Positions 18,401 through 63,541 of a stretch of 64,000 bases of DNA are shown piece after piece. The translations under genes and the position numbers were made by a program. How positions within the stretch are numbered: the stretch's first letter is position 1; the number at the start of each line of letters is the position of its first letter. The DNA comes from Hyphochytrium catenoides (lineage: Eukaryota; Protista; Hyphochytriomycota). The notes under the pieces were generated by a model. That model did no database searches, had not been told where the DNA came from, and saw only the letters and a list, made by a program, of their open reading frames with translations. Location of the stretch: NCBI GenBank assembly GCA_900088475.1, contig FLMG01001221.1, positions 49,338 to 113,337 of the forward strand, given 5' to 3'.

Positions 18401-21214
18401 TGACCAGGCGCTCCAGACAAGGCTGAGAGGCTGCTGGGAGGGAGTTGACCAATAACCGGAGATTCCTGATCCGCTCTTCTATCACCTCCAACTCGTTCGC
18501 CCTTAAGAAAGATTGAATCACGGAAGAAATGGATAAGCAAGGTTTAGGCATGATAGGAACGGAGGGCAGACCCATATCGGAAACTTACCCAATAAAGGCC
18601 TGATACATATAGCTTGGGATTAGTGGCTCAGGAAGCTCCATGAGAAACTGAGACCAGGATAGAGTAAAAAAGATTCTTCAGTGTACTCAGAGTGTGTGGA
18701 GCAAGACTCGGATGCACATAGAGGGCCAGGCAGGCCAGGATAGCTATAGGCTTATGGTATTTGAGGGGATCGGTATGACTTGCAGTCGAGAAGCCGCACC
18801 TGCATCATCATAGTCGTGGCGTGATGAACATGACTCCATACGCTGAGCTTGCCTGTCTGCAGAATGTCTAACCAAGGAAGAGAGGAAATAGGGCAAAGGC
18901 TTAGAAGTGCGCAGGCCCCTTCATGTCGTAAGTGTCAGGGGAAACAAGGTGTAATAGCAAAAGCTCTAGGGTCCAGAATACTATGCTTCGGAGAGAGACA
19001 GTCGATCAACGCTATAGCAGGATGGACCTAGGCGGAAGAGGATATGAGAGTCTTATGATAGATTGAAGTCATCAGTGCTAAAGACCGAGAGCGGTGCGAC
19101 GAAGGAGTCATTTTTCCTCTTCGTTGCTTTCCTACCGGCCATCAACCGCTGCCAAGTAGTGGACGCCAAATCTGTTTGGAAGATACCTTCTGTCTCCACT
19201 CCCGCATCCAACACACGGCAGCACCCTTCCAAGAAGTTCGGAACGGAAAGCGCGGGAGAGAGGAGAGCAAGATCGGAGGATACAGGGGACGAGACCAGCT
19301 GGGACAAAGGGACACGGAAGAGAAGAGGCGCAGAAAGGGATCGGCTGTTCTTCTTGTCGTGCAAAGGATGTGGCAACAAGTGAGAGGGAAGGGTAAAGAG
19401 AAGCCGCGTAATCATGGCCTTCGCCTCTTCACTCAAAAGCTGGTAAACCGATCTTGACACCGTGCGTTTCTTTCCCATTCCTTGGATTTTGTCTTCATCA
19501 ATCGCTCTCTCAGTTGCCCTCTCTCTTTTGTCTTGACTGACAGTTTGATGCTTCTCAGCAGCTTCAGGTCCAGCAGATGTGCCCCCACCTTGAGAATCCG
19601 CACAGTGCGATGGACCCGAGGAAGCCCGGCTCTCTCTATATCTTCTCCTCCGAGACTAGCATGAGAAAGAAGGGCCGACAAGGGACGATGAAAGAGAGGG
19701 CGAGGAGGATCCTCACGCTGATTAGTGGTTTAAAAAAGGGTGGATTCAAGGTCTTTCAAGAGAAGTTGTAGAAGGCTCGAGCTCTTTTACCTTCACTTCA
19801 AGCGCCAAACCAAAGGGCAACTGATCCAGAAGCAGTGTCAGGGAGCAGAGGAGTTCGAACTGATTGTCGTCTCTCACTAGGGCATCAGAAGGATAAATGG
19901 ATGCCAAAAGCGCGCTCTCATCCTTTCTCCTGGCCGATTCGGCAATAGGAACAGGATCAGCAACAGATTTGGAAGCTTTGTGACAGCTTCGCGGGAGGCA
20001 TCCAGTAACAAATACCGAGAGAGGAGATGACGTTCAGAATAGGATAGAGACACCGACCTAGATAAACAAGGGCATAGGAAAGAAGTGAAGAACCGTTGGT
20101 AATCGTAACCCAGGTTGCGTTCCTACCTCCAACTACGAAGTACTTTACTAAGTATGTGCGTGTTGAGACACTGACGCAGCCACGCATGGACTTTTGCTCG
20201 GACTGTCTGGACACCAACAAGGGACTCTGCCACACAGAGCGAGGAGTGCAGACCCTTGACGGCAGGACCCTCTGCCTTTTTCTTTCCGTCTCCCTCTTTC
20301 TCCTTTTGCAGTCGTTCCGCCTCTATCTTGGCTAGTTTGAGCTCGGAGGGAAAGAGGGAGGAGGAAGAAAGCTCCAGCAGTTCCTCGTTGAACTCCATCT
20401 CGTACCACGAGAGTGCTTTCGCTTTGGCCAAAAGAATCTCCTGCTGTATCTCCCACTCCCTCTGTCTTTCGAGCTGACCTTTATCAATTGCCTGCAGAAA
20501 TGACCAAAAGCTTGCTGCAGCTTTCTCTGTCTGGCCATTAGTTTCCTTCAGCGGTCTCCTTTCTCTTCTTGATGCCAATCCATGCAACAGACACTGTTCT
20601 AAAACTCTGCATAGCTCTTTCACGGTCTTGTCTTCATCGTCTAAGGTGGGCAGAGTCTCCGTAGAGATGACGGCGTTAGCATTGACCCGTTCTGTTGTCT
20701 CTCTAAGAAGCCTTTTAACGAGAAGAGAGAGGAGGGCTAGCTCACTCTCTGCACCTTCTTCTGTTAGCTGTCGTTCCTCTTCCTTTTCTCTGGTCAAGCT
20801 GCTGCTATCTGCAGGAGAGGAAAAGATAGCAGAGCATGTGGTATCGAACGAATCGGTTCTTTCCTTGATTTTCTCCAGTGATAGAGGATCATGGCGAGAG
20901 GCAGGGTAAGGAGAGGGAGAAGGTTTAAGCTCCTCGCTTGGCTCTATTCTCTCCTCCTCTTCAGGGCTGTCAGAGCTAAGGGGAGAACCTTTTGCTGTCT
21001 GTCTGTTGCTCTCGGAGAGAGGGACTGGCGGGGATGACGAAATATTTCCCTCCGGATGGCTTCCCTTCTTGGCCTTGGCAAGAGTGGTGAGGGATGAGGA
21101 TGAGAAAGCGCTTTCTCCAATCTCTGCCTCGACAGGGAGGGCATGGCGCTCCTCCTGATTAGAAGGACCCGCAGGATCCACTGATAGCTGTCTGTCTCGC
21201 TGTATTCCCACCAT
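15420..21214 (-). CDS. Multi-exon RUN - RhoGAP(Q) - ELMO(Q) - SH3b-like scaffold protein
   Basis: RUN: LCRVLEQCLLHGL, FWSFL, AKVHAWLRQCLNTHIL. RhoGAP: LFRVPL..VPNFLEGC..ETEGIFQ, LRLLVNSLP, HESNGLSLSVLA. ELMO: WEENGFHK|NDPMKDLQPFG, FPFPQA, FEILFCVAMMLLDRNW, ATMMDFPVIL. Last exon after intron 15665-15744: GGVNIRRSP..GDIIETVGRKGNWLKM..GWL. Not every internal exon boundary was resolved. Confidence 0.8.
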
Positions 21215-21749
21215 AGCGCTGGGCCAATAGAGCACAGAAACGGACAGAAACAAAAGAAACTGAAGGTTACTTGCACGGGACGGCGTGTCTAACAGAGAAG
21301 GGAAGCGGAAGGTGTTGTCAACGAGCGCACAAACGGGAGATTTGACCTCCGGCACATGGAGACAAGGAGTTCCTTAGACAGGACAGAGAGAAAGAGAGAG
21401 AGAGGACAGAGAGAGAGAGAGACCCACAGACAGACTACACGGTTGACCTAAGGACACAAATAAGCGCTGAGCGCTTGTGACGCTAAAAGGGGAGAGAAGT
21501 GTTCCTTTACTGCTCGAGGAGTGCTCGGGCTTCCCCCTTGGTTCTTGTCTCTAGGCGACTTCCACTCAGAAGAGTGCTTCTCAGTCGCGCTAAAGCGTCA
21601 TGCAGCGTGGCCTTAGATGATGCTTGGCATGGGAGGAAGCTTCACCTTCTGACTGGGGGACAGGCTGATCATGAAGATAAGAGCTGGGCAAGGAAGGGCA
21701 TGAGAGATAGCGAGAGTGATTGAGAAAATGAGTGCAAGGAAGAGAAAGC

Positions 21750-21763
21750 GTGAGAGAGAGAAA

Positions 21764-21821
<58 letters not shown>

Positions 21822-21845
21822 AGAGAGAGAGAGAGAGAGAGGACA
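21750..21845. repeat. (AG)n microsatellite
   Basis: Direct AG run. Confidence 0.95.
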
Positions 21846-29399: not shown

Positions 29400-30335
29400 T
29401 TACTGGCACTTGCCGCCGGTGAAAGTAGTGCCGGATGGGCAATTGAGCACCTTGTCCACGTAGGAGCGGAGGATAGCGACTCTGCTGTAGACACCAGGCT
29501 GCTCCCTGGCGCATCCCTCTCCCCAGGAGGTGAGGCCCACGAGTACAGGTACGGCATTATCGACGATCATAGGTCCGCCAGAGTCTCCCTGGCAGGTATC
29601 TACGCCTGGACGCTTGGCACAGATCATGGTCTTATGAATGGACGAAGGGTTTCCATAGAGTCTCTGGCATTCGCTCTGGGTGACGAGCTTCACACTTGCT
29701 TGAAGAAGCTTTGGGCTTGTGGATCCGCCCTCGGAGGTTGCTCCCCAGCCCAGAATCTTGAAAGTACGGGCGCTGCTCTCAGTGCTGTAAGACCCATCGT
29801 CCAGCTCAGGGTAGGAACGGAGGTCAGCTCCTCCAGTGACCTTCAAGATAGCGATGTCGTTAGCCTGAGCGGGAGAGCCATAGCTTGGGTGGACGTTGAT
29901 CTCTACGACATCCATCTTGATCCCCTTCTCGGAAGTGTCACGCCAGTCGTGGCGGCCAGCCTCCACTCTGATGCGAGATGGGTTGCTCACGAGGTCGTCC
30001 ACGCAGTCTAAACACAGGGAGGAGGGAGGTGTAAGAGATGGGCTCGCACATGTAATGGACACGATCAGAGGAAAGAGGCAGAGTATGGCTAGGAGAAGAC
30101 AAGGCAATGGAGGATAAGGGTACGTACGGGCAGCGGTAAGGACGACATTCTTTCCAATGTAGGAAGCGCCACAGAATGGTCTGGTTCCAGTCTTCGACAG
30201 GAGGCCGACCGTCCAGTTGGAATATTTGAACTTTGGCGCTTCCTGGCCTCCGACAATGGTAGAGTCAGAAGCAGACACCAGTGAAGACTGGGCTAGCAGA
30301 GCAGCCGCGAAAAGGAGCTGAATGACACCTGGCAT
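29400..30335 (-). CDS. Secreted trypsin-like serine protease (S1A), 2 exons (30335-30128, 30007-29400), 271 aa
   Basis: Signal peptide, IVGG, TAAH|C (His codon split by a 120-nt GT-AG intron), NDIAIL, DTCQGDSGGP and SWGEGC..PGVY. Confidence 0.95.
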   Translation of the reverse strand: MPGVIQLLFAAALLAQSSLVSASDSTIVGGQEAPKFKYSNWTVGLLSKTGTRPFCGASYIGKNVVLTAARTYPYPPLPCLLLAILCLFPLIVSITCASPSLTPPSSLCLDCVDDLVSNPSRIRVEAGRHDWRDTSEKGIKMDVVEINVHPSYGSPAQANDIAILKVTGGADLRSYPELDDGSYSTESSARTFKILGWGATSEGGSTSPKLLQASVKLVTQSECQRLYGNPSSIHKTMICAKRPGVDTCQGDSGGPMIVDNAVPVLVGLTSWGEGCAREQPGVYSRVAILRSYVDKVLNCPSGTTFTGGKCQ

Positions 30336-32065: not shown

Positions 32066-32131
<66 letters not shown>

Positions 32132-32171
32132 CTCTATCTCTTACTTTCTCTCTCGCTCTCGCTCTCTTTCA

Positions 32172-32205
<34 letters not shown>

Positions 32206-32217
32206 TCTCTCTCTTTC

Positions 32218-32252
<35 letters not shown>

Positions 32253-32410
32253 TCTCTCTCTCTCTATTTCTCTCTCTCTTCTTCTCTCATCTCTCGCTCT
32301 CTCCTCTCTCTCTCTCTCATCTCTCTCTGTGTCTCCCGCCCACTTTCCTCTCTCTCTCTGTCTCTCGCTCTCTCGTTCTTTCTCTCCCCTTCTACTTCCT
32401 TCTTTCTCCA
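32066..32410. repeat. (CT)n/(CTAT)n compound microsatellite
   Basis: Direct repeats visible in the sequence. Confidence 0.95.
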
Positions 32411-35740: not shown

Positions 35741-37120
35741 AAGCAGGCAATGGCCAGAGGGAGAGAGGGTAGAGAGCTTGACTATATCGTCTAGAAGAAC
35801 CCTGTCCACTGTTTTTAAAGCGGCAGGGGAAGGCCTTCTCCCACTACTCAGACAGAACAATTTAATGTCAACATTTCTCTTTTTCAAAAGATTTGCCTGT
35901 CAGAATCCTCCTTGGCGCGCCCTTTGTCNNNNNNNNNNNNNNNNNNNNNNNNNNNNNNNNNNNNNNNNNNNNNNNNNNNNNNNNNNNNNNNNNNNNNNNN
36001 NNNNNNNNNNNNNNNNNNNNCTGCCGCCCGTACTACTTTGACTTGACTGCACCAAAACCTGCATTAGCCTTTATCTCCCTGCTCTGAACGAACGCAATGA
36101 GATTTTACTTCGGTCCCTGGAGCACGACGAGCTCTTCTTCTGGTGAGTAGGACAGCTTGCAGAGCAGTCGTCGCGTGAAGACTATCAAAGTCACTATGCG
36201 GCTCATAGTGAATGTGTAGATCTCAAGCTGAAAGATCGGGCTGCTCAGCACTTTTCCTTACCAAGCTGTCGGTTCCTTAGGTCCTATTTGAAGAGAGGTA
36301 TAGCTCATTGAAAGTCCACAGCTAGTACCATGTTTGGGATTAGGGTTAGAGGATTCTTCCGTGATCGACTAGGAATGCATCAAGGGCCTCGCCATCTTCA
36401 AGCTACTACTATTGCCGCCATTGTCACTGCTGGCTGACGGCTGACTCTGCGCTGACGGCTGACTCTGCTCTGAAGGCTCAACCCACAACGAAGGCAGAGC
36501 AGTGGATGACCTCCTTATCCCAGCAGTCTCAGACAGTAGGTGCCTTGTCCATTCCAGAGCCCGATCATGGAATATTGATGAAGAGAATGGCGATTGTTGA
36601 GAAGACGCTGACAGAGACATCCACAGCGTCCAACCTTCTAGTTTGAATCACCACGCTGATGTCCTCGATCTCTTTCATCAAGCGCAGGGCAAAGAGAGAT
36701 TTATGTGCCGCGGGCAGCGCAATGTTGACCCGTCGAATAGCCTTTCTCTTCATCAATGAAGTGTTACAGGATACGGCTGCTGTGATTAGCCCGAAAGAAG
36801 AAGTTAGAAAAAAGATCCGACAGCCACCGCGATCAGCAGCAATGACTGCTTTAAGCGTCCCGGTAAACGACCATGGAGAAGAGGAAAAACCAATAGTCAA
36901 AGCTCTTGCTGAAGAGAAGAGAAAGAAGGTTTAGCCGAAGGATGAGAAGCTGACTGATCGCTAAGGGCGGGCTATAGTGGCAGAGCACAAAGTATCGAGA
37001 CTGGTCGTATCAATGATGGATCTATGGCGGCGATGGAGCCAGCAGCGATAGCGAGGCCCAGCATAGTGTACATGGGAAACAGAAGCGGAAAGGCTCGCGG
37101 TCCGCGCCATTGTCTATTGA
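35550..37120. repeat. Segmental duplication, copy 1 (trypsin last exon plus downstream block)
   Basis: Collinear similarity to 38960-40530, for example cttatcccagcag(t/c)ctcagacagtaggtgccttgt and gacagagacatccacagcgtcca. Confidence 0.85.
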
Positions 37121-42024: not shown

Positions 42025-42921
42025 CTAAAAGTATCTGACCACATAGTTGTTTGCAAAGTGATCCATCATGTTCCCCGCTCCAGCAGAGCTAGGAAAGTCC
42101 TCGTCCTTAGGCTCGACACGGGACCCTGTCATATGGAAAGCGTTGCCCCAGTGTCTATACCGTCTGAATCCGGTAGGAGGGCCGCTGTTGGGCACTGGAT
42201 CGTTCTTGTTGACAAAGCGATACTTCACGATGTCCTCTCTGATGGATGCCAGAGGAGCAGAGGCAGAGGGCTCCTTCGTGGCAAGGGATTGAGGCTCTCC
42301 ATAGGAGTAAACGACCAGATAAGGAGACCTTGGCTCACGGAGGCGGGTGAAGTTGAATGACAGCGCCCCAGCAGCGTTCCTGTCCAGAGAAGCGTCCTTC
42401 GCAAAGTAGATGGCACTCAGCGCGGCAAGTGAAGCACCACGAGAATGCCCAGTGAGGACGAGCTTGTGCTGTGGGCTCTGGTTCAGGCAATCCTGGACGT
42501 CTGCCACAAATGCGGCGTTGTTCCTGAAGTTACTGATGGCCTTTGTGAAACCAGAGTGAGAGTACGCCACCACCTTGCCGTCCTTAGCTTTGAACTCGAT
42601 GACTTTGCTGTCTGAGTTGCCAGTCGGGCCGTTATAGTCCTCATTGTCATTGGAGCCTCTGAAGGAGATGATGCAGGTCTTGTCCCCGCTGGCAGTGAAG
42701 GCAAAGTCGTTGGCAACGGTATGGCTCTTCCTGAGCTTATACTTGGCCGAGCCAAGACCGAACCCCGTGTAGGCTTGGAGAGAGAAGAGAGCCATATCCG
42801 TGGCTAGACCTTTGTCGTAAGCAGCAGCTGCCTGCAAGCTGCTTTTTGCTTCGATGTTTGCAGTCATTGCGGCCGCCAAGAGCACCGCGTAGGCTAGGCC
42901 ACGTGTTATGAGGCGGTCCAT
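42025..42921 (-). CDS. Secreted class 3 lipase (alpha/beta hydrolase), intronless, 298 aa
   Basis: Signal peptide, ISFRGS oxyanion strand, HSGF, nucleophile LTGHSRGA, YSYGEP, RFVNKNDPVP, YRHWG and C-terminal DH..NY. Confidence 0.92.
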   Translation of the reverse strand: MDRLITRGLAYAVLLAAAMTANIEAKSSLQAAAAYDKGLATDMALFSLQAYTGFGLGSAKYKLRKSHTVANDFAFTASGDKTCIISFRGSNDNEDYNGPTGNSDSKVIEFKAKDGKVVAYSHSGFTKAISNFRNNAAFVADVQDCLNQSPQHKLVLTGHSRGASLAALSAIYFAKDASLDRNAAGALSFNFTRLREPRSPYLVVYSYGEPQSLATKEPSASAPLASIREDIVKYRFVNKNDPVPNSGPPTGFRRYRHWGNAFHMTGSRVEPKDEDFPSSAGAGNMMDHFANNYVVRYF

Positions 42922-45334: not shown

Positions 45335-47686
45335 ATGGCTGAGAGTATTAGCGATGGTGCACCCCTCGCCGCCGCCTCTGCCACAAGTGCAGCATTCCTC
45401 TCTCCAGTCTCCCGACATTCTTCTTCTGCGTGTCTAGATCTTTGTCACTTGTTGGTCACTCATCTAAGAGAGCGATCTGTCCGGCTGCTGGACAATTCTG
45501 TTGCCTCAAAGTATCTTTTGGCACAGGCCAGGACGTACATCGATAATGTGCTTGATGGGAACGTGACAGCCACCAAGAAGTTAGTGAAGGTCCAGACATG
45601 CCATCGAGGCGCAGATGGCAACGAACTGCTTCATGGCCTCAAAAAGCCTTTGGAAGCCTCGTCACAGCCGTCCATGCTTGCGGTATGTGGAGCATCTGGC
45701 TCCACACAGCATCGTCAACCGCAATACTCTGGCTTAGCTTCATCTGCAGACGGAACAGCAGGAGATAAGGAAGGCAAATCTAGGCCACATCAGGCACTAG
45801 TCGCTCGGCATCCTTACGTGGAACTGAGCGAAAGAGAAAGCAGCGTCACGGTAATGGAGCAGCTCATGGGGAAGCGCTTCTGTGCGTGGTACTGGGCGAG
45901 GAAGACCTTCTTCTCTCCTCTAGCCATGCTCGCTGCCCTGGCGACAAATTTTCTCTTCACCTCCTCATTCATCCTCTTCCCTCCTGGGCACTGGTCAACG
46001 AGCCTGTACGTTGTAGTCGCTCTCTTTACCATTTTCCATCAGTGTGCGGTCTTCAACTCTGCCGTCGTCCTTCGGTGCATCGGAGCTTTTGAAGGCTTCT
46101 ATCTTAGCGTTGAGCTCCTCCTCTTCTCGGTTGCCCTCAATGGCCTGCTGTGCTTTAGGCCGATGGCTCCATTGTTCTCTGGCGTGGCTTTCCTGGGCTC
46201 TTGGAGCCTCGTGATCTTCTACGACAGTCTGCCCTTAGGCGTAAGGAGACGCTCGCGGTACTTTTACTGCTTCTTCGGACTTTGCCTAGTGAGTGATATT
46301 GTGCTGCTCAACCTCCGGACACCTTCAGTGTGTATCTACCGCGTTGATTTGATGCACGGGCTCGTAGACGAGGACAAGGAAGTCGTCCCAAGAAGCCAAT
46401 GGAGCTTTTCTTTGCTAGGTTATGCCCTCAACCGCATCTTCACCATCCTCATGCTGACCTGCAGGCTAACGTATACAGCGTTCAAGCATCCGCAAGACTG
46501 CATTCTAGTGAAAAGCCGCGTGCATTTGATAGACAACTCCTGCCTCCAAAGGCAGATGGCAAGATCAGTCACACCAACCCCGGATTCCCTAGGAGACGAG
46601 GGGTCAAAAAAGCTGACCTCTTTGGATATTGATGACCTGACTTATCAGCTCATTAGCCTTCTAAAGGAGTGGCAGAAGTCCACGGGAGATGCCGCAGAGA
46701 GACAGGCATTAATCAGGGCAAGAGCTGAGATTGACATAGTTCTTAGCGATGTCTGCAACAGCTCGTCTAGCCTCGGTGTGATTGTGCCATTCGACAGTAC
46801 GGAACTGCAGCGTGGTTCCTCTATTCCACTGCCAGCGGCACAGGCGAATGGTTATAATAAATACCCAGAAAGGAATCGGCCAAGGAAGAGGAAGGTCCTG
46901 GTGGCTGTTCAAGCGTACGGCAGCTTGAGCGCGGAAGAGAGTAACCTGACACTATTGGAGAGATTTCTGGGTCAACAAAGCTTCGACCGCTATCGATCCT
47001 ATCAACAGGTCTTTCTTCCGCTAGGATGGCTCTCGTCCGTCCTCCAACCAGTGACCTTCTTTCTTGTCCTTACGGCTCCATTGCCAATGACGGCGAAATA
47101 TGTACTGCTTGTCCTTCAGCTGTTATCAACCATTGTCTGGGCATTCCAGATGACCTCTGCCATCAACCTCTGTCTGCTCCAGAAATGCCTGAAGACCTTC
47201 GACGCTCTCTTCTTCAGTATTGAAATTGCTCTCTACTCTGTGGCACTGTGGTGCGTCTTCTGCTTCAAGATCTGGGCCTTGGTGATGGGACTAACTTCAG
47301 CGCTCGGCACTTGGACTATCTTGGTCGGTTATGACAGCGGAACTTTGGCGTTTAGAAGAAGGTGCCGATATTCCTATCCGATCCTTTGCGGCTCGTTTGT
47401 TGCCCTGTTCTTTCTCTTCTTTCTTCAGGTTCCTAGTGACACATGCGAGTACCGCTTTGATCTCTTTGAGGGGCTTGTGGATGACTCAGAGTCTCCTACA
47501 CGACGAGGAGGACACAGATGGAGCATGTCCATACGCGAGTTCCTACTCAATCGCATTCTCACCATCTTAGTGCTGACTCTCAAGCAGACTATCATGGCTC
47601 TCAAGCACCCGGAAGACTGCATACTGCTAAAGTCCCGAGTGAGACTGGTGGAGATCCAAGGTCAAGATAGGGGATCAAGGAGCTAG
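45335..47686 (+). CDS. Uncharacterised multi-pass membrane protein with an internal tandem duplication (2 units), intronless, 783 aa
   Basis: Two homologous halves, each with AR.(E/Y)ID..L, Y..LS..ES..T..E...G, YDS, C.Y..DL..GL, W.+S....LNR..TIL.L and KHP.DCIL+KSRV.L. About 6 hydrophobic segments per unit. Confidence 0.85.
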   Translation: MAESISDGAPLAAASATSAAFLSPVSRHSSSACLDLCHLLVTHLRERSVRLLDNSVASKYLLAQARTYIDNVLDGNVTATKKLVKVQTCHRGADGNELLHGLKKPLEASSQPSMLAVCGASGSTQHRQPQYSGLASSADGTAGDKEGKSRPHQALVARHPYVELSERESSVTVMEQLMGKRFCAWYWARKTFFSPLAMLAALATNFLFTSSFILFPPGHWSTSLYVVVALFTIFHQCAVFNSAVVLRCIGAFEGFYLSVELLLFSVALNGLLCFRPMAPLFSGVAFLGSWSLVIFYDSLPLGVRRRSRYFYCFFGLCLVSDIVLLNLRTPSVCIYRVDLMHGLVDEDKEVVPRSQWSFSLLGYALNRIFTILMLTCRLTYTAFKHPQDCILVKSRVHLIDNSCLQRQMARSVTPTPDSLGDEGSKKLTSLDIDDLTYQLISLLKEWQKSTGDAAERQALIRARAEIDIVLSDVCNSSSSLGVIVPFDSTELQRGSSIPLPAAQANGYNKYPERNRPRKRKVLVAVQAYGSLSAEESNLTLLERFLGQQSFDRYRSYQQVFLPLGWLSSVLQPVTFFLVLTAPLPMTAKYVLLVLQLLSTIVWAFQMTSAINLCLLQKCLKTFDALFFSIEIALYSVALWCVFCFKIWALVMGLTSALGTWTILVGYDSGTLAFRRRCRYSYPILCGSFVALFFLFFLQVPSDTCEYRFDLFEGLVDDSESPTRRGGHRWSMSIREFLLNRILTILVLTLKQTIMALKHPEDCILLKSRVRLVEIQGQDRGSRS

Positions 47687-49263: not shown

Positions 49264-51044
49264 TTAGCCCTTGGTGGGAGGAGCGCCCGGGTCTAGAGGT
49301 TGGACAGAAGCAGTCACGCCGGATTTGATAGTGATCCTCTTGCTAGGGATCGACTGCGATGTCTGCTGCTCTCTCTTGCGCTTCAAGGCAAACCGGTTGT
49401 ACGGATCAAGCAACATACCCGCGACTTCGTCATCAACTTTAAGCCAGAAGTCCGGCGAGCCACCGTCTGTGTCCACTGTCTCCATAATTCTCTTTTTCAT
49501 GGCAAATGTCACGTTGATCTCGTCCACACTTTCTGGTGCGAAATGAAGACGCGCAAGGTTTCTGCTGCTCTCCAGTCGCGAGTTCTTCGCTATATCCGGA
49601 TTCCTTAGAGCTAGAGATTGCCGGAGAAAGAGTATGTTCTCGGCGCAGAACTCAGTCACCAGGTAATCCTGAAACTCGTCCATCACAGGATGGCCAAGTT
49701 TCTCTTCCAGGAGGGAGATCAAGTCTGAGCGCTTCTGCAGCCTGCGCGTGAAGGCAATTGCTTCAGACGTGCCCTCAGTGTCAGAGGCCAGTCTACTACT
49801 GGTTCTCTTTCTCAAAAACCTTCTCATCTCCTTGCGCATCTTGAGGGTGTAAAGGATGGTTCCGAAGGGGAAGCTCATCTGGCACATCATGAGGCATGTG
49901 CCAAACAAGATGACAGATGTCCAGCTATTCAGGACGGTATCGCTTGAGACCATCCCGAAGATATTGACAGACAAGTTAGCACAAGCGACACTGATACCTG
50001 CCACTGTCAGCGCCAACCGAACCCGGAAGGCGTCTCGAACTCCTTTGATGAAGAATACGCTGAAGATCATGGATAACACGAAGAAGACCACGGTAGTATA
50101 CAGATCGGCAGAGTACTATAAGAGGCACAAAGCAGCAATGAAGATCGGTGTTAGTCTAACCTGCAACGCCATGCCACTAGCAGACAGATCCTGGTAGCAC
50201 TTACCACGTTGTTATCCTCGCCACATACACTCGTATAGTCTCCGCCGCAAGGGTAGTACTTCGGGTCATTGTAGTTAACAAGCCAGTACTTCGCCGGGCT
50301 TTGCTTCAATAGGACGATGGTGGAGGCCGATCCGGCCAGCATGAGGACGATGCTGCCGACAGTATATAGCCACTGTCCCTTCAGAAGCGGCTTGTTCCTA
50401 TAGAAGATGCTGCCTCGATTGTTTACGGAATCAAAAGCCACCTGGTAGTCGATCCGTAGATGGACGGCGTTGAGAATGATGGAAGAGCAGAAGGGAAAGT
50501 AGACTGAGAAGTAGAAGATGATGCCGTAGGTTAGACACAGCTGATCCAATTGTAACCACCACGGCGCGTCGCTATAGATCTCCAGCAGAGCGAAGCCCGT
50601 GAACATGCGGGAGACGCCCATGAGTAGATAGACAATGTCGGCAGCGACAATGAGAGGAATGTGAAGACTCGAGAACGGAGGCTCATTCCTAAGTTTGATG
50701 ACGTACACGAGGTTGAAGATTGATACCACGACTCTCAAGAGAGAGATGAAGAGTTTGAAGTAGTTGGTGAAGCTGATGCCAGCAGCGTTAAAGGCGGACA
50801 GCGGCGGACTCTCCACCGTCGTCGTGTTATCTCCATTTTCTCCAGAGGAAGAGGAGGATGAGGTACCCGATGAGCTACTAGTGGAGAGCACACAGGCAAC
50901 AGGGTCGTCCTCTGCCGGGACGTTCCCCCTGTCAGCAGTGTCAGTGCTTTGAGCCATCGACCACGATTCGGGCGTAGCACATTCAGTCCAGAAGAGGATG
51001 CCGAAGAGCAGGAGAAGGAGAGGGACATTGTTTGTCACGCGCAT
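49264..51044 (-). CDS. 7TM-RGS protein (signal peptide, seven hydrophobic helices, C-terminal RGS domain), 2 exons (51044-50205, 50115-49264), 563 aa
   Basis: An 89-nt intron (GTAAGT..GACTAAC..TATAG) joins two ORFs in frame. RGS motif FQDYLVTEFCAENILFL..F..ESVDEINVT..V..MLLDPYNRF. VRDAFRVRLAL recalls the D.F.I+.E loop of 7TM-RGS proteins. Confidence 0.85.
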
Positions 51045-52649: not shown

Positions 52650-53537
52650 TTAGAAGTATCTGACCACATAGTTGTTCACGAAGTGATCCACCATGTTCCC
52701 CGCTCCAGCAGAGCTAGGAAAGTCTTCATCCTTAGGCTCGACACGGAACCCTGTCATATGGAAAGCGTTGCCCCAGTGTCTATACCGTCTGACACCGATA
52801 GGAGGGCCGCTGTTGGGCACTGGATCGTTCTTGTTGACAAAGCGATACTTAACGATGTCCTCTCTGATGGATGCCAGAGGAGCAGAGGCAGAGGGCTCCT
52901 TAGTGGCAAGGGATTGAGGCTCTCCATAGGAGTAAACGACCAGGTAAGGAGACCTTGGCTCACGGAGGCGGGTGAAGTTGAATGACAGCGCCCCAGCAGC
53001 GTTCCTGTCCAAAGAAGCGTCCTTCGCAAAGTAGATGGCACTCAGAGCGGCGAGTGAAGCACCACGGGAATGCCCAGTGAGGACGAGCTTGTGCTGTGGG
53101 CTCTGGTTCAGGCAATCCTGGACGTCTGCCACAAATGCGGCGTTGTTCCTGAAGTTACTGATGGCCTTTGTGAAGCCAGAGTGAGAGTACGCCATCACCT
53201 TGCCGTCCTTAGCTTTGAACTCGATGACTCTGTCGTCTGAGTTGCCAGTCGGGCCGTTCCAGTCCTGGTTGTCGTTGGAGCCTCTGAACGAGATGATGCA
53301 GGTGTTGTCCCCGCTGGCAGTGAAGGCAAAGTCGTTAGCCGCCGTGTGGCGCTTCCTGAGCTTATACTTGGCCGAGCCAAGGCCGAACCCCGTGTAGGCT
53401 TGGAAGGAGAAGAGAGCCATATCCGTGGCTAGGTCCCTGTCATAAGCGGCGGCTACGCTGCTTTCTGCGTCGATGTGGGCAGTCATTGCGGCCGCCAAGA
53501 TCGCCGTGTAGGCCAGACCACGTAGTAGGCGATCCAT
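52650..53537 (-). CDS. Secreted class 3 lipase paralog, intronless, 295 aa
   Basis: Start MDRLLRG at 53537, matching the paralog. Same catalytic motifs (GHSRG, NDPVP, DH), and the central ~125 aa are identical to 42025-42921. Confidence 0.92.
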   Translation of the reverse strand: MDRLLRGLAYTAILAAAMTAHIDAESSVAAAYDRDLATDMALFSFQAYTGFGLGSAKYKLRKRHTAANDFAFTASGDNTCIISFRGSNDNQDWNGPTGNSDDRVIEFKAKDGKVMAYSHSGFTKAISNFRNNAAFVADVQDCLNQSPQHKLVLTGHSRGASLAALSAIYFAKDASLDRNAAGALSFNFTRLREPRSPYLVVYSYGEPQSLATKEPSASAPLASIREDIVKYRFVNKNDPVPNSGPPIGVRRYRHWGNAFHMTGFRVEPKDEDFPSSAGAGNMVDHFVNNYVVRYF

Positions 53538-55482
53538 CCTCCTGCTTTTTGAGGCCACTCTGGGTGTTCTATTACTGTTGAGACTGGAGCGGAGCTTGTT
53601 CTTGGGTCTGTCTGTTGGCCAGTTGGAAAATTGGAGAATGACTATAAGACGCAACGGCTCCCAACAAGAGGCCATCAGGCAGAAGTCCAGGCTCCTGCCC
53701 GTAATATACCCGCTGTCTGTGGATAGGCCAAGTCTTCATAGGTATGCAGCTTGACAAGAAGGAAGATTAGTGGCAACGCACCAAGCAAGAAAGAGCAAGG
53801 AGGGAGAAGGGAAGATAGCAAGGTGCGGGACAAGGATGATGGCAGAAAGGCGACAGATCTCAAGATTGATGACGCGCCGGCAGGGACTCCTCCTCCAGTT
53901 CCTTAGTCAGGTAGAAATCTGTCTGCGGGGACAAGTGTCCTGACTACTAGCTCGAGCAGTAGTACTCAGAGCAAAAGGGGCGCAGGCCCGCGTCGGCGTG
54001 CAATGACAGGCCGTCGGACAAAGTCTCTCAGCAGAGCAGTAAAGGGAGGGAGAAAGGAGAGGTAGCGACCAGGACCAGTTCTTATCTATGTTTTCAGTGC
54101 GTCTCCATCAAAGAAGGTAGACCATAAGTACCTTACGCCGCCTAGCTTCCTTATTCCCTCTCTCTTTCTCTTTCTCTCTCTGTCTCTCTCTCTGCTCTCT
54201 TACGTCTCTCTCCTCCTCGTCATCCACAGTAAGGTGTTAGACAGAGAGACAGGAAAGAGTGAGTGGTGGAGACGGCCAGGGCCCGCTCGCTTCTGGCTCT
54301 AGACATTGACGTGGAGATGTCCTCGCTGCGTCACCGCCCGCGAGGTAGCAGGTGATAATCTGCAGCGCGGTGGAGATGCGAGTCTAAATCTTCTCTTTAC
54401 ATGGCTCCCCTTCCAGTGTGAGAGCTACTAGATCTCCTTTGACCTTTCTTCTCGTCGTTGGCCCGATGACAAGCAGTTAGAAGGCTCTTGAAGAGGCCAT
54501 TGCTTCTGTTATGACACCAGACACAAGCGTACCGAGTCCTCCTTCTCCCTTGATCTAACAAGGAAAGAAGCAAGTGAGAAAGACAAGAAGAAGGAGAGCA
54601 AGAGAGCTATTATTCTATGAGAGCATCATCCTACTAGGAAGAAGAAGAAAGAGATGCGCCTTGCTTGCTGATGATGATCAGAGGCGGGAGGTGACTTGAA
54701 GAATGCTCCCGTTGCCCTCGCGGTCATCCTAAGAATCTTTATCCTCATCGCCATCTCTACTCAACTTTTCACATGGTCGTCTGTACGCTCTTCCATTCTT
54801 TATCATGGCCTTTCCCGTCGTCTGCGCTCCGTCTTTCTGCCATCAAGAGAGAAGTAGCACAAGGGACAGGCACCACGACGTCCCTGTCTCTCTCTCTCTC
54901 TTGATCTTCTGCGTGAGAGGAAGGCTATTGTTCCTGTTCAAATATTATTGGTCACGGAGTTGAACTGTCACGGCAGCAAAGATCCATCAGCAGCTACCTA
55001 GAGTTCTTCCTTCTCCTCCACCTCGTGCTTCTGGACTCTTGGTCCACCACTAGCCACCAGCAGAAGGGATATGGCCTGTACATCTTGGCCAGGCACGCCG
55101 CATCTGCTGCATCTTATGCAAAGACCTCACGGTTAGCACGCCAGACCTCCGCAGGAGCGAATTGCCAGAACTTCTTCCTCCCCTTGTCCAAGACATACAT
55201 CGGACAATTGAGCAGCATGATGAGACGGAGGGAGGACGGAGCTATGATGAGGGAAGGTAGGATAAAGCCTGCGATCAAGATGGCGTGAAGAGGACTGCTC
55301 GACGTGGCCAGTCAAGAGATGATGCGGCCGCAAGACGGAAAGAACATGGAGAAAGGCTGGAGAAGCCCTTGGAACTTCTGTTCAATCAACAGCAAGGTGG
55401 GTTGAGCAGAAGAAGAAAGAAGGAGAAGAGCAATTGGCGCTCCATAGTCGTTAGCAGCCTTTCGGCTCCCTACCTTCGATAT

Positions 55483-55552
55483 CAGCAGCAGTGGCAGCAG
55501 GAGCAGCAGCAGCAGGAGCAGCAGAAGAAGCAGGAGCAGCAGCAGCGGCAGC
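55483..55552. repeat. (CAG)n/(CAGGAG) triplet repeat
   Basis: cagcagcagtggcagcaggagcagcagcagcaggag... Confidence 0.85.
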
Positions 55553-56800
55553 ACTAGAACTTGAGCTCCACTAACTCTTGCGCCTTAGAGGTAGTAGTAG
55601 AAAAGGAAGTAGACGTGAGACCAGCGTAATAGATAGTAGGCTTGTCGGTAGTTGTTAGCCAGCAGCAGGTAGAAGAAAGGCCCCTTGGCGGCAAGTATAA
55701 GCGGTGTACGAGCTAGATGAAGAGGGTTAACGAGTGAGCAAGGGACGAGCGATGGATAGGTGTTGGCTTGCAGCAGAAGAGCCGCAGTCGAGCTGGACGA
55801 AACGCCCAGCTCTCCGCATTGTTGAGCGCCTAGATAGCTTTGCTAGTAGCAGAGGTGTTGCGGCAATAGAGTGAGAAGAACTCTAACGATCTGCAGTCAA
55901 CATTGACAATAAGGACATACTAATGATCTGTCATCCTTGAGCTTTCCACGGCCCTGCTGTCTCGTCTAAAGCGCTCCAGACCAGACAACGGACCTGTGAC
56001 GGACCTCTGTACAAAGTTGACAAGTCGGTGTGCTATCGTTGCAGCTGTCTCCTCATCAGCTCCTTCCTACGTCGAGAGAGAGTAGGACCTAGCCTCTTGA
56101 ATGGTCTCTATGCCGCTCCAAGATGACATCTTTGGCCCTGACACTAGGAGCCAACCTCTTCCCTGCCTTCTGCTCTACATTTGTAAGAGCGTTCATCGCT
56201 CTTAGGAACTGTTGATTAACTCTATATAACTAGTGAAAAAGGAAACCTCTTGGGCTGTCTCTCTCTCTCTCTGTTGCAGCCGCTCGACGGTGCTGAGAAG
56301 ATGACGGTAGGCACGGCCCATCTGTCAATCGATAGCTATATCAGCTCTACAGGGTGAACCTTGAGAGCAACTCTGGTGCCTCGCATCGGGTGGTTCCACT
56401 TCTGTCTGTTATAAGAGATACCAACAATAGACACTAGGCCGTCAAGACAACAGGCCATAGACACAATAGCGACGCCCCAGCACCACTAAAGCTTCCCGCT
56501 CACTATCATTGTCGCGCGTTAGCCTGCTCCTGATCACTACTTTTCTCAGCCCTTCTTCGTCAGCAACGCGGTGAGGCATTCTCTATCACTTCACTGCACA
56601 TGATCTAGGTAGAGGGAAGGCAGAGGAATGTAATAGCAGGGGAACTGCTGCTCACACTGCAGAAGAATCTTCCATTTGCTTCCTGCCGCATCAGCATCTA
56701 TGCCCAACCAAAGGTCCGTCTATTTATCATCGTCAGGGCATGGATGGGATTTGCATCCTCATTGGTGACCCTAGCCTCAATCCCTTAATCAGCTTCTTCC

Positions 56801-58360
56801 CTATCCAGGACCATCATTGGCAGTTCCTTCCCAGCACTTAGCAGGGGCCCATGCAGAAGGCACCTGTTCCTTGTTTCCTGCTCTATTGACTCTCTTTGGT
56901 GATGACTCCTGCTCCCCATCCCCACCAACGTTTGAAGGCGATGCCCCGGAGGAGACTTCGGTGTCCTTTTCTTCTCTTGATGGTGGCGACTGGTAGAGCG
57001 TAGGGCTTGCCGGGGTGGCCGAAGGAGAACCACGACCTGACAATGAGGTAACAGGAACGCCAGATAGCTCTATAATTCTCAGCCTGCTTCTGAGTATCAC
57101 GCAGTCCTTTGGATGTCTAAAGGCGAGGTAGGTAGTACGGAACATGAGCATCAGCAAGCTAAAGCCGCGGTTAAGACAGAATTCCACTACTGACAAGCTC
57201 CATTCTGAGGCTATGGGAAGACTGGACTTGCCGCTTTGCTCTCCCATCGCTAATGTTTGCTCTGCAATTCTCCGGTCGTTGCTGTCCTTATCGTCATATA
57301 GTGCGATTCCATCGCTAAAGTCCAGCTTGTAGGAGCACATGTTGGGCGACATGCGGAGGTAGATAAGGGCAAGATAAGTAGGGAAAAGGAGACTCCACGA
57401 GACGAGTGACACCTTCATGCCCTTCCGGAGGGATATAGGATAGCTGTCATACACAAGGAAGACACCTGCCGTTCCTACGACGAAGGAGAAAGCTAGGAAC
57501 CAGCCTGAGAAGCTGAAGCAGAAGACTCCCGAAAGAGACACACCAAACATCACGAACTCAGCAATGAAGATTAGTGCATCCACCGTTTTGAGAGATCTCC
57601 GAAAGAGCTCCAAGTTCCAAAACGATGCTTGTCTGAACGCCAAGAAAATGACCAAGAAGCCAAACAGCGCTGCCAGCATTGCACTCCCAGATGGTTCAAG
57701 AGGAAGGAGCAAGTGGCAATAGAGTAGTGCGCAGGTGCCAAAGAACATTGTAGTTGGTAGGGGTCCCACATTAAGAATGCGCTTGTGCCTCCACCACCAC
57801 TCGAAAAATTGTCTGCCGAAGAATGCTTCCAACCCTGTTAAATTGCTCTCTTCTAGACTAAGCTCCGCATACGACTGAACGGCAGTCATTAGTCGCACCT
57901 TCTGTTCGCGTTGTCCCTCAACTTGACGCTTGTGAGTAGATGCAGAAGGGGGAACCAGCTGTGGGGCTAGGGGAGGTTGACCTCTCCTACCCGAAGAAAA
58001 CCTTTGTTCTTCGTCGTGGGTCACCCAAAGCTTTGGAGCCACCTTCTTCTGCGTACACCTGGAGCTCTTAGCGGACGCCTCGTCAACCAGAGTTGAGGGC
58101 TGAGGAAGAACAAAGTCTTTGGCTGTTGAGGCCAGCGCAGCATCTATTTCCTCTCTAACTGCAAGCAGGGCTGCCCTGTGACCCCGCTCGTCAAGAAGAC
58201 TTCTCGGTTTGATGCGAAGATGTTGAAGGAGAGACTCACAGAGAATGAGAAGTACGGACCTCTGGGAGGATGCCTGCCCCCACGGGATGACTTCTGAGGA
58301 ATGAGGTGAGGAGGAAAACTTATTTTTGGAAGGGATGGAGCCTCTGGAAGTGCTCATCAT
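56801..58360 (-). CDS. Single-unit paralog of the uncharacterised multi-pass membrane family, 519 aa
   Basis: VREEIDAAL, AVQSYAELSLEESNLTGLEAFFG, LKTVDAL, VFCF, YDS, CSYKLDF, EWSLS..FCLNRGFSLLML and RHPKDCVILRSRLRI align with both halves of 45335-47686. Confidence 0.85.
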   Translation of the reverse strand: MMSTSRGSIPSKNKFSSSPHSSEVIPWGQASSQRSVLLILCESLLQHLRIKPRSLLDERGHRAALLAVREEIDAALASTAKDFVLPQPSTLVDEASAKSSRCTQKKVAPKLWVTHDEEQRFSSGRRGQPPLAPQLVPPSASTHKRQVEGQREQKVRLMTAVQSYAELSLEESNLTGLEAFFGRQFFEWWWRHKRILNVGPLPTTMFFGTCALLYCHLLLPLEPSGSAMLAALFGFLVIFLAFRQASFWNLELFRRSLKTVDALIFIAEFVMFGVSLSGVFCFSFSGWFLAFSFVVGTAGVFLVYDSYPISLRKGMKVSLVSWSLLFPTYLALIYLRMSPNMCSYKLDFSDGIALYDDKDSNDRRIAEQTLAMGEQSGKSSLPIASEWSLSVVEFCLNRGFSLLMLMFRTTYLAFRHPKDCVILRSRLRIIELSGVPVTSLSGRGSPSATPASPTLYQSPPSREEKDTEVSSGASPSNVGGDGEQESSPKRVNRAGNKEQVPSAWAPAKCWEGTANDGPG

Positions 58361-59119
58361 CTGTGGTTTCCTCTGTACGCCTGCCGGTTCAGTCTATCTA
58401 GGTGTTTCTCGAGCCGTAGACAGGATGGAGGTTGTCAGTTTGTTGTGATGCTATGGCGGGCTTGTTGATTGTGGAGGGCGCAGCACCTCATCATCAGTAA
58501 GTCCATCAACGCTCCACCTGGTTAGTGAAGACTTCTCAAGACAAGCCATCCATGGTCAACAAGCTCGAGGAGCTCCACTAAGTGCCATCTTCGATAACCC
58601 TCACCAGGTAATGCCACCGCCTCCGATGCTTCTGTCATGCTCAAACCGACGGAAGACTCTCTTACCCTCGTAGCTTCTTCAAGACCGGCGTTGTTCTGGC
58701 ATCATCCTGCCTCACAGCAGCAGCAGCAGCAGCAGCGGACACCGCCAAGAAGAAGGAAGAAGGCCACCAGTGACAAATAGTCCGGAGGAATAAAGTTATG
58801 AAGGTTGCAAGCAAGTCAAAGGTCATGGTCTCGTTGAAAGCTCCTCAAGCGTGCCGATTATAAATAAGAGCCAGTAAATGAGCTATGTTCAGTATAGAGG
58901 GTACAGGATCCTCAATACATGGCCGTTACGTTGATTCGGATGTGGTCTGGTGATGGCCTCTGGGATTCAAAGAAGAGTCGTCCTTTAACGACCCAGCGCG
59001 CTGCCGCCGCCAGCAGAAGGCATTGTTATCCTCCTCTGGGCCAGCTGCCTAAGAATGCGGTGGCGGCCACCATTTTAATTTCTTTACTCTTTCTTCTCGC
59101 CATAAGACTGCTATGAAGT

Positions 59120-59470
59120 GAATTTTTAGATTTACGTAAGAATCAAGGTAGCGAAGACCTTAGAGCGCGTGATCTCTTTTTAGCTATGTGGATTTCTGAT
59201 TTATTTATGAAACAAGTTGAAATAGATGGTGATTGGTATCTTATGGACCCAGATGAATGTCCTGGATTAACAGATAAATATGGAGATGAATATGAAGAAT
59301 TATATTGGAAATATGTTGAAGAACAAAAATTCAGAAGAAAGGTTAAAGCTCAAGATATTTGGTTAAAAATATTAGAATCTCAAATTGAAACAGGTACACC
59401 TTATATTTTATATAAAGACCAAGCTAATAAGAAGTCTAATCAAAAGAATATTGGTACAATTAAATCTAGT
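59120..59470 (+). other. Foreign AT-rich insertion: 117-codon fragment of class Ia ribonucleotide reductase large subunit, probably of giant-virus origin
   Basis: [76 protein letters not shown]. Hand count gives 103/351 G+C (~29%) against ~50% flanks. No introns or stops, and the ends are abrupt. Confidence 0.9.
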
Positions 59471-60995
59471 TCCCCTCCTATCGTCGCCTTTCATTCGCCA
59501 TCGACTGTTTATCAGACCGGTCACCAGGGGTTCCACGATCTTTTACGACGAAGAAGAATTTGCTATGAAACAGATCACGATGATGAAGAATGGGAGTTTG
59601 TTCGCGGACACGACTACTTTCCATAGCAGCGCGGCGGGATCGTAGCGCGGGATCATCGTAGCGCATCTACTACACTGTGCAGCAGAAGAGGAGGAAGGAC
59701 CATGCACCACCAGCAGCCACACAGACACCACCACCACCACCAGAGACAGGACCCAAGATGATTTGTCCGTAGGTGCACCAGCAAGCTTCTCCTCAGCAGT
59801 TATAAAGAGCAAGAGACTGAGATGATGGAGCCGCAGATGACAGTACTTCACGCAATACCAGGCTGCTCGACTATCGGACACTCCAACAGCAGCAGCAGGG
59901 AGGAGCATTCACGCAATACCAAGCTCCTCTCAACAAGAAAGCAGCGCCGCTCCGCCGCCCGTCGGTCGCCAACAGCAGCAGGGACGGAGGAGACGGCAAG
60001 CAGAAAGAAGAGGAGGAGGTGTTACCCTGCTGCTGTCATGGGAAGTGAGGGACACCACCACCAGAAGAGCGTTGAGGGTGTTGGGGGAAACGGGAAACGC
60101 TGTACTAGGCGATAACTGTTGTGATTGATTCATGCTAACTTGTACTACAGTAATCATCTCTGTACGGAGAATCTGGAATAACAAGTCATGTTAGACGAAC
60201 CTGTACGGTATTTTGCTCTTTTATCTGAGATTTAAAGTCTCTGTTTTTAGGCTCCAGGAATCAATAGAGCCTGATGGCCGTTAGCAGTCATATTGAGCGA
60301 TACGGCTTTTGTTCCACTGTCCCATGTGCAGCGGCGGCCAAAGATCGAGAGAGAGAGAAAAGAAGATCTTGCTGGTCACGCACCTTCACTCTTCTTTTTG
60401 TTCCCTCCTCTCGTCATCTCCTCACTCGTCTGTGAGGCAAACCAACGAAGAAGAACAGTAGCCAGCCAGAACCTGCTCCTCCTCGGCTTGACTCCTCTGC
60501 CCTATTATGGCACAAGAGGAGGAGAGAAGAAGGAACAACTGAGGAGAACAAGGAATGGGGAAGAAGAGAGAATGGCAAAAGTGTGTTCCTCCTTGAATTC
60601 TGCCTTATTTGCTGCTGGTTTGTCGACGTTGTTCTTCGTTGAGCTCCCCAGCCAGGTTTCTTGCTCTCAGCAGCAGCCTAACGCATCCCTAGAGAAGCAG
60701 ATCAAGGCACGTTAGGGGCCACCAACTACCCACCAGCTGAGTCTACGATCAGCAGAGCCCATCTTCTTCTGATGATGAGAAGCCTGTTCGCCTCGTCATC
60801 ATAATCATATTTGCATCACCATCAATAGTTCCTGAAGAGAAAGCATACAATCAGCCGCCCACTAATCATACATCTCACCAGTAAAGAGAAGTGGAAGAAG
60901 GAGACCGCCTTTTGTAAGAAACCGGAAGAAGTCATCCTCTTTCTCTCTGAGTTACACATCCTGAGCCTCCCTCCCGTTTATTACCAGCACCAACC

Positions 60996-61733
60996 ATGAC
61001 AATAAGAGACACACCCGTACCTCCTCGCGCAGCGGCTCCTCCATCTGCTGAAGGAACGACCCGAAGTCCTGGTCATTTAGCTCCACCGGAAGACGTGGTT
61101 GTTGCTGGCGGCGAGGGTAGCTGCACAGTGATCGAAAGGGGAATCTCCCCCAGAGCTTACCGAGAAAATACTTCGGGACCAGGAGGCACCGCCGTTGTCG
61201 TTAGACAATCTGACAAGGGATGGTGGGAACACATTATGGACGATGATAACCGAGTGCTCTATCTCTCTGCGGCGGCACTTGCTGTGGCAATTCCCACGCT
61301 GTACTTTGCTCTGCGAAAGAAGGCAGAAGTCTATCAACACTCTGTTACTATCAACACGCCCTCGGCACGCGTTGTCACGTTCTTCACGGATTTAGACAAG
61401 TACTTTGATGCCTTCTCCTCTCCTGACGTGCAGTACACCGTTATGGACCAAACGAGGGTGGGCACTATCACCCGCTTCAAGCTTCGGCATGCGTTGCCTT
61501 CAGGGAAAGAGGTAATCACCCATGGCAAGCGCAAGTATACCAAGCGTGACGATGGGGCCACTGTCTTTGAGGACGATCTCCCCATCGAGGGCTTAAAGGG
61601 CAAAGCTGCTNNNNNNNNNNNNNNNNNNNNNNNNNNNNNNNNNNNNNNNNNNNNNNNNNNNNNNNNNCTCCGAAAGGCGTTCATATGCCACCTGGTTCTC
61701 CTCAAGCTTTTCAACAAAACCCTTGGAGGATAG
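60996..61733 (+). CDS. Membrane-anchored SRPBCC/START-like (polyketide cyclase-type) protein; 3' end uncertain because of a gap
   Basis: TM segment VLYLSAAALAVAIPTLYFAL followed by YQHSVTINTPSARVVTFFTDLDKY..VGTITRF, a typical SRPBCC start. Confidence 0.6.
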   Translation: MTIRDTPVPPRAAAPPSAEGTTRSPGHLAPPEDVVVAGGEGSCTVIERGISPRAYRENTSGPGGTAVVVRQSDKGWWEHIMDDDNRVLYLSAAALAVAIPTLYFALRKKAEVYQHSVTINTPSARVVTFFTDLDKYFDAFSSPDVQYTVMDQTRVGTITRFKLRHALPSGKEVITHGKRKYTKRDDGATVFEDDLPIEGLKGKAAXXXXXXXXXXXXXXXXXXXLRKAFICHLVLLKLFNKTLGG

Positions 61734-63504: not shown

Positions 63505-63541
63505 NNNNNNNNNNNNNNCTCTCTCTCTCTCTCTCTCTCTC
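63476..63541. repeat. (CT)n microsatellite with gap
   Basis: Direct CT run around Ns. Confidence 0.95.

Follow-up and report, generated by a model that had tools for sequence, protein, structure and literature searches.

How did 351 bp with the composition and coding content of a giant-virus gene come to lie in a contig of the protist Hyphochytrium catenoides, and is the piece anything more than a trace of infection? We address this question for a low-GC island at positions 59120-59470 of a 64-kb stretch of contig FLMG01001221.1 (assembly GCA_900088475.1; hereafter "the window", meaning the whole 64,000 nucleotides analyzed, in whose coordinates all positions are given). The island encodes part of the large subunit of a class Ia ribonucleotide reductase (RNR), and an initial annotation had taken it for a small viral piece patched into the host chromosome. 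The reading that we favor, with a probability of roughly two in three, is that it is an inert viral piece, captured recently by end joining at a chromosome break.

An island of viral composition and coding content

The feature on which the analysis centers is as follows:

59120..59470, forward strand: stretch from within a giant-virus gene for the class Ia RNR large subunit, equivalent to residues 309-425 of its 806-aa relatives, with both ends cut off

The GC content of this fragment is 29.3% (44, 28 and 16% at codon positions 1, 2 and 3, respectively), while the mean for 351-bp windows over the 64 kb is 50.5%, with a standard deviation of 3.2%, such that the island is the minimum of the distribution, ~6.7 standard deviations below its mean. 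Both the low GC content and the preference for codons ending in A or T that had been described are thus confirmed, the former by the lowest 351-bp window and the latter by the 16% at third positions. The reading frame comprises 117 codons with no internal stops and no frameshifts, and its translation, which belongs to the barrel domain of the class Ia large subunit, aligns end to end with residues 310-426 of human RRM1 (E 3e-45, ~62% identity as counted from the printed alignment) as well as with residues 310-425 of yeast Rnr1. It also matches positions 93-209 of the 523 positions of the Pfam profile Ribonuc_red_lgC (PF02867, E 2.7e-40), so that translation and profile agree with the initial annotation on 117 stop-free RNR codons.

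The boundaries of the island are sharp. Ungapped DNA homology to viral RNR genes starts at 59119/59120 and ends at 59469/59470, with nothing beyond, and the coordinates originally assigned to the island agree with these homology ends to within 1-3 bases. Past 59470, where the viral relatives continue into the codons of the N-L-C motif, the window instead has sequence of 50% GC, and the sign of a third-order Markov log-odds score (trained on viral loci versus the rest of the host window) flips within ~20 bp at both ends of the island. Homology ends and Markov score therefore both support the abrupt switch to host-like sequence, cut just before N-L-C, that had been noticed at the outset. We also note that 60 bp inside the island (59140-59199) have a host-like Markov score, which comes from GC-richer synonymous codons than those of the relatives; this segment nonetheless has a gap-free alignment and codes for conserved residues, and it looks like local codon variation, with a mosaic not being favored.

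The island covers 14.5% of the relatives' full RNR gene and 22% of the barrel domain. Missing from it are the ATP cone, the N-terminal domain, the greater part of the barrel and the catalytic residues; it stops immediately ahead of what is N426-L427-C428 in the relatives. Because so small a part of the gene is present, and the catalytic residues are missing, the island is unable to encode a working RNR and is inert, in line with the earlier view that this is not a functional gene.

Donor lineage and state of preservation

The piece is of viral origin, as can be seen from its closest relatives. Among IMG/VR viral contigs, the best matches to the 117 residues have 90-91% protein identity (12 loci), the best matches in JGI metagenomes reach 92%, and among 1.84 billion cluster representatives the best is at 92%, followed by 90%, 80% and then values of 76% or less. 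We further queried a collection of 5.8 billion proteins with the best cluster representative and re-scored the matches locally against the island; the best among the matches listed is P0295, which is identical at 113 of the 117 residues (96.6%) and is carried on a metagenomic scaffold of 62 kb that is dense (92% coding), intronless and of 29% GC. Thus, similarity to giant viruses (96.6% for P0295, and 90-92% for the IMG/VR loci and those from metagenome-assembled genomes of giant viruses, GVMAGs) stands against ~62% for the cellular human RRM1. At the DNA level, the best identity to the island is 87.7%, with a synonymous divergence (dS) of ~0.75-1.1, and as far as these comparisons reach the exact donor virus is unsampled.

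The RNR genes of the relatives have 25-31% GC in loci of 23-29% GC (~41% in the distant locus L011), and those of the close relatives align with the island without gaps, the complete genes being 806 aa in length, or longer when they carry inteins. In this viral clade, RNR lies in a conserved block of genes (compared in L013, L044 and L046) that extends from ~4 kb upstream to 8 kb downstream of it, in the order Exostosin-like glycosyltransferase, asparagine synthase (AsnS), two open reading frames (ORFs), RNR, DUF5872, AAA ATPase, an ORF and thioredoxin. Protein identity within the block, contig versus contig, is 55-92%, and the block genes are intronless and on both strands, with 92% of L046 being coding; the relatives' contigs reach 220, 412 and 473 kb. 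The order RNR-DUF5872-AAA is common to L001 and the contig of P0295. Two minor observations concern the block itself, namely an extra Cupin_8 gene directly after RNR in L046, and a weak, sub-threshold match of one block ORF to the SLATT_4 domain.

The IMG/VR loci include the GVMAGs L001 (91%), L004 (85%), L005 (84%) and L009 (72%), all of which are assigned to lineage MGVL29, superclade SC4, of the nucleocytoplasmic large DNA viruses (NCLDVs) in the tables of Schulz et al. 2020 (PMC7162819). MGVL29 is a metagenome-only lineage with no isolate, of 27-34% GC, from freshwater and marine samples; it has no clear host in the host-transfer table of the 2020 catalogue, and SC4 is listed there apart from the mimivirus superclades SC6, SC9 and SC10 (PMC7162819). 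No hallmark genes were found within 10 kb of the relatives' RNR; what supports the viral assignment is thus synteny with curated GVMAGs, together with gene density, the size of the contigs and composition. For the predicted structure of P0295 (predicted local distance difference test score, pLDDT, of 89), the best named viral match is the RNR of the klosneuvirus Yasminevirus, at only 48% identity. Judged from these sequence comparisons, it is well supported that the donor would be a giant virus of, or close to, the MGVL29 lineage (Nucleocytoviricota). The giant-virus-like origin proposed in the initial annotation accordingly holds, given the 96.6% identity to P0295 and the synteny of its scaffold with giant-virus metagenome-assembled genomes and the contigs of 220-473 kb, but its suggestion of Imitervirales as the source is not established, the assembled relatives being MGVL29/SC4 and apart from SC6, SC9 and SC10.

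A cellular donor, such as an AT-rich prey organism, a symbiont or a co-cultured eukaryote, was considered in this connection, given that the encoded protein belongs to class Ia of the eukaryotic type, with the ~62% identity to human RRM1 noted above, and that no named isolate is found among its close relatives, whose clusters point to metagenome sources only. However, all close relatives lie on intronless contigs of up to 473 kb with a shared viral neighborhood, several of them are curated NCLDV metagenome-assembled genomes with core genes of the nucleocytoplasmic virus orthologous groups (NCVOG), among named entries of the viral library the RNR of a giant virus (Yasminevirus) is the best structural match, and identity drops from 97% to at most 76% outside the close viral clade. 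Taken together, these observations make a cellular donor hardly credible at all.

The fragment also shows no decay. It differs from its closest relative at 50 nucleotides, of which 39 are at third positions, and at 4 amino acids, and its pairwise ratio of nonsynonymous to synonymous divergence (dN/dS) is 0.04-0.08, compared with 0.058 between two bona fide viral genes. Such low values, as between viral genes, imply that the sequence accumulated nearly all of its divergence as a working viral gene. In an alignment of 55 distinct relatives (at least 80% identity), 46 columns show no variation and 66 reach a conservation of at least 95%; at none of these 66 does the fragment differ, and it has no residue that is unseen in the 55 relatives, whereas private residues average 1.1 per relative in the same set. 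There are no indels, and no drift toward host GC, with 12 AT-to-GC versus 17 GC-to-AT differences. The description of the piece as un-ameliorated was therefore apt with respect to its viral GC content, its lack of stops and its lack of private residues. Since ~80% of the island's sites are nonsynonymous, zero private changes would correspond to at most 3-4 neutral substitutions since capture (~1%), which suggests that the capture was recent, roughly within 1% neutral divergence.

Junctions, assembly and the rest of the window

The features at and around the two ends of the island are listed below:

59109..59117, forward strand: left copy of TGCTATGAA, judged a chance repeat
59117..59119, forward strand: left junction AGT, host-like except possibly for its last T, overlap 0-1 nt
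59468..59470, forward strand: right junction AGT, the last viral codon (Ser), AGT in several relatives too
59471..59560, no strand: 90-bp segment, host-like in composition, that separates the island from the right TGCTATGAA copy
59561..59569, forward strand: right copy of TGCTATGAA, judged a chance repeat, overlapping a second 9-mer match

AGT is present at both junctions (59117-59119 and 59468-59470), as had been reported. In the viral relatives a T likewise precedes the first codon, and the T at 59119 may thus be viral too, which leaves an ambiguity of 0-1 nt at the left junction. At the right junction, the AGT repeats the host AGT of the left junction, such that overlap or duplication is ambiguous over 0-3 nt. 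The 9-bp direct repeat TGCTATGAA is likewise where the initial annotation had placed it, but the meaning attached to its bracketing of the island does not hold up, as the repeat is at chance level and its right copy is 90 bp off the junction. In the surrounding 1.9 kb, five exact two-copy repeats of 9-10 nt are seen where ~seven are expected (N^2/2/4^9), the right copy overlaps a second 9-mer match, between 59564-59572 and 59206-59214 inside the island, and the simulated frequency of a bracketing repeat of this type is 0.7-17%, depending on the flank length allowed. A target-site duplication by TGCTATGAA is ruled out for the same two reasons. We found no poly(A), terminal inverted repeat, long terminal repeat or abutting target duplication at the island ends, by which transposon- or retroposon-mediated insertion was rejected, and no inverted repeats of more than 9 nt involving the island. 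The 90 bp at 59471..59560 have no match to the related viral loci compared or elsewhere in the window, and are either host flank or filler DNA; other copies of the island flanks are also absent from the window, where matches are of microsatellite type only.

We also considered the ends of the fragment in relation to inteins, many with LAGLIDADG homing-endonuclease domains, which are found in P0002, P0003, P0299, P0306, P0308 and ~100 other relatives. Intein positions were taken as domain bounds, not as breaks, in intact genes. One site lies ~21 codons before the first codon of the fragment (45 proteins) and a second at N-L-C, 2-3 codons past its last codon (at least 30 proteins), and in close kin, at 91% identity to the fragment, an intein is present at one or other of the two sites. 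The chance that one end of two would fall this near to one of ~five intein sites is ~8%. The proposal that both ends lie at intein sites was discarded, since only the right end has a hot spot nearby, the left end being ~21 codons away from the closest. As an idea only, the right end of the viral DNA may have been made by a homing endonuclease acting on an intein-free allele during a mixed infection.

How far the junctions can be trusted depends in part on the assembly. The window contains N runs at 4075-4079, 13411-13455, 35929-36020, 61611-61667 and 63505-63518 (5, 45, 92, 57 and 14 bp, respectively) and is a scaffolded, probably gap-closed draft, which bears on that trust. The main rival to capture by end joining is an assembly artefact, in which viral DNA from the culture or sample was put into the host contig by a chimeric read, a chimeric clone or gap closing. 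Five N runs are typical of gap-closed short-read assemblies, the piece is pristine and its ends are codon-exact, and 351 bp is about the length of one read or a small local assembly. Such an artefact would nevertheless require two independent false joins 351 bp apart inside the gap-free stretch around the island (36021-61610, ~25 kb, extending 23 kb leftward and 2.1 kb rightward of it), with no k-mer by which a graph assembler could be misled being common to the host flanks and the viral relatives (they share no more than 1 nt at the left junction and 3 nt at the right one). Furthermore, no identical full-length RNR is found among the 120 closest matches listed from the collection of 5.8 billion proteins, the best being at 96.6%, where host runs may lie outside that collection. 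On balance, we consider an artefact unlikely, while giving it more weight than any other alternative discussed here.

The window holds no viral genes next to the island. Neither full-length viral RNRs nor 369 ORFs of related viral loci match the 64 kb anywhere else, by which the presence of more of the virus within the window is excluded, and the remaining patches of low GC content, at only 37-40%, have no viral match and resemble ordinary AT-rich or microsatellite sequence. These searches also bear on whether the island is all that is left of a large giant endogenous viral element (GEVE) whose other parts were deleted or lie elsewhere. Eroding large NCLDV insertions are documented in many protists, algae and fungi (for example, PMC12455990, PMC8204020, PMC10640383). 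Here, however, host composition resumes within ~20 bp on both sides, no other viral ORF match occurs in 64 kb, and erosion is zero, which is unlike an element old enough to have lost all else; we regard this origin as improbable.

Could the host instead have put the piece to use, whether as an exon or to produce small RNAs directed against the virus (that is, as a heritable antiviral memory)? AG at 59117-59118 and GT at 59469-59470 would serve as a possible splice acceptor and donor, the viral frame stays open for 52 codons further into the right flank, with a 146-aa ORF at 59186-59626, and an intact frame could reflect selection. Against this, AG and GT dinucleotides are expected by chance, the 146-aa product is not on record as a gene, the 64 kb contain a single fragment with no cluster and no inverted repeat of more than 9 nt, and recency is the simpler explanation of the intact frame. 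The exon reading was rejected, the AG and GT being present with no further support, and co-option in either form appears very improbable. The initial annotation had gone further, raising the idea of an acquired antiviral memory based on many such short pieces that yield small RNAs; in its fullest form, the island would be one of many fresh giant-virus pieces turned into small RNAs or silencing marks, as a heritable, sequence-specific memory. Virus-derived pieces are not clustered in this locus, which has one fragment in 64 kb, no other viral match and no hairpin-capable inverted repeat, and this idea strikes us as extremely improbable.

The remaining features of the window are those of the host:

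56801..58360, reverse strand: nearest long upstream host ORF, 519 aa, without Pfam family
60996..61733, forward strand: nearest long downstream host ORF, 245 aa, running across the N gap at 61611-61667
45335-47686, forward strand: 783-aa ORF, without Pfam family (checked by Pfam and exact look-up only)
42025-42921, reverse strand: class-3 lipase ORF (lipase_3)
52650-53675, reverse strand: class-3 lipase ORF (lipase_3)
29400-30335: trypsin-domain ORF
6571-8331: GH18-domain ORF
10424-11074: TIR-domain ORF
49264-50091: RGS-domain ORF
18111-18575: RhoGAP-domain ORF
20123-21355: RUN-domain ORF
13484-15135: MFS-domain ORF
32066-32386, 12165-12389, 4840-4972, 21741-21841, 4036-4117 and 55483-55553: long (CT)n/(GA)n tracts reaching 320 bp in length, together with a (CAG)n tract

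That the island is intergenic, as initially described, is plausible from its place between the 519-aa (reverse strand) and 245-aa (forward strand) ORFs, the basis for this being ORFs and not gene models. The 519-aa ORF has no homologue in the collection of 5.8 billion proteins, and exact look-ups of three ORFs of the window, this one included, gave no match. The Pfam domains in the window's host ORFs are of general eukaryotic types only, and the domain-bearing ORFs (lipase_3, trypsin, GH18, TIR, RGS, RhoGAP, RUN and MFS) have no close relative in the protein collections, in which the host lineage seems to be poorly sampled; the best matches of the trypsin ORF, for example, are 30-41% identical and come from insects, bacteria, oomycetes and chytrids. 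The two lipase ORFs share a strand, lie at a distance of 10 kb from each other and are probably paralogues. An Rfam search of the window found no RNA gene, and the dinucleotide and (CAG)n tracts explain the extreme strand-skew spikes in its composition profile.

Proposed capture by end joining and comparison with known systems

Taking these alternatives into account, capture by end joining would have proceeded as follows. An uncultured MGVL29-like giant virus (Nucleocytoviricota) would have infected the host, and a short double-stranded fragment of its DNA, originating in the middle of the gene for the RNR large subunit, would have entered a chromosome break in an intergenic region of the host genome, where end-joining repair would have sealed it in, as it does for nuclear mitochondrial and plastid DNA segments (NUMTs and NUPTs, respectively) and other filler DNA. 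What argues for such a process is the presence of a single, short, internal piece with overlaps of 0-1 and 0-3 nt and host-like sequence immediately outside it.

Several points weigh against this interpretation. The joining of the piece to host DNA is seen in one draft scaffold only, with five N gaps, and the pristine pattern is equally expected from a contaminant or from a non-integrated piece. In addition, the fragment consists of exactly 117 whole codons in the viral frame, which for random ends is a ~1-in-9 coincidence.

If the join is real, the island is physical evidence of contact between this host and an MGVL29-like virus, from a lineage without an isolate or a clear host, and the pristine state of the fragment would make that contact recent. 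It would also provide a clean example of a very short viral capture, of a size that scans tuned to multi-gene viral regions miss, and counting such pieces across the genome would reveal the frequency with which viral DNA enters the nucleus and becomes fixed.

There is ample documentation of giant-virus DNA in eukaryotic genomes, ranging from GEVEs at the Mb scale to scattered genes. The island resembles GEVEs and smaller NCLDV inserts of protist, algal and fungal genomes in being giant-virus DNA of viral composition that, in the given scaffold, is contiguous with nuclear DNA, as a putative record of past infection. However, GEVEs are tens of kb to Mb in length, contain numerous genes, hallmark genes among them, and are in most cases eroded, whereas the island is a single uneroded piece of 351 bp from inside one gene, with host sequence on both sides, and is thus not a GEVE by a definition that involves multiple genes, tens of kb and hallmark genes. 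The RNRs of MGVL29/SC4 and their metagenomic kin share with it 85-97% protein identity over the 117 residues and the same GC content and codon bias, but they are complete genes in a conserved viral neighborhood, of which the island represents 14.5% of one. With insect endogenous viral elements in clusters of PIWI-interacting RNAs (piRNAs), and with the spacers of clustered regularly interspaced short palindromic repeats (CRISPR), it shares the presence of a short heritable viral sequence in a host genome; unlike them, it is without array, cluster or repeat architecture, so that this likeness is conceptual only. A further parallel is the capture of NUMTs and NUPTs as filler, which similarly involves short internal fragments with overlaps of 0-3 nt, no terminal repeat, poly(A) or abutting duplication, and no function. 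The difference is that their donor is an organelle, while here the donor is a virus and the repair pathway is the one that we infer from the junctions, which are blunt or overlap by a few nt and lack transposon hallmarks, as is characteristic of end-joining capture. The island is thus a known kind of viral fossil, at the small and fresh extreme of its range.

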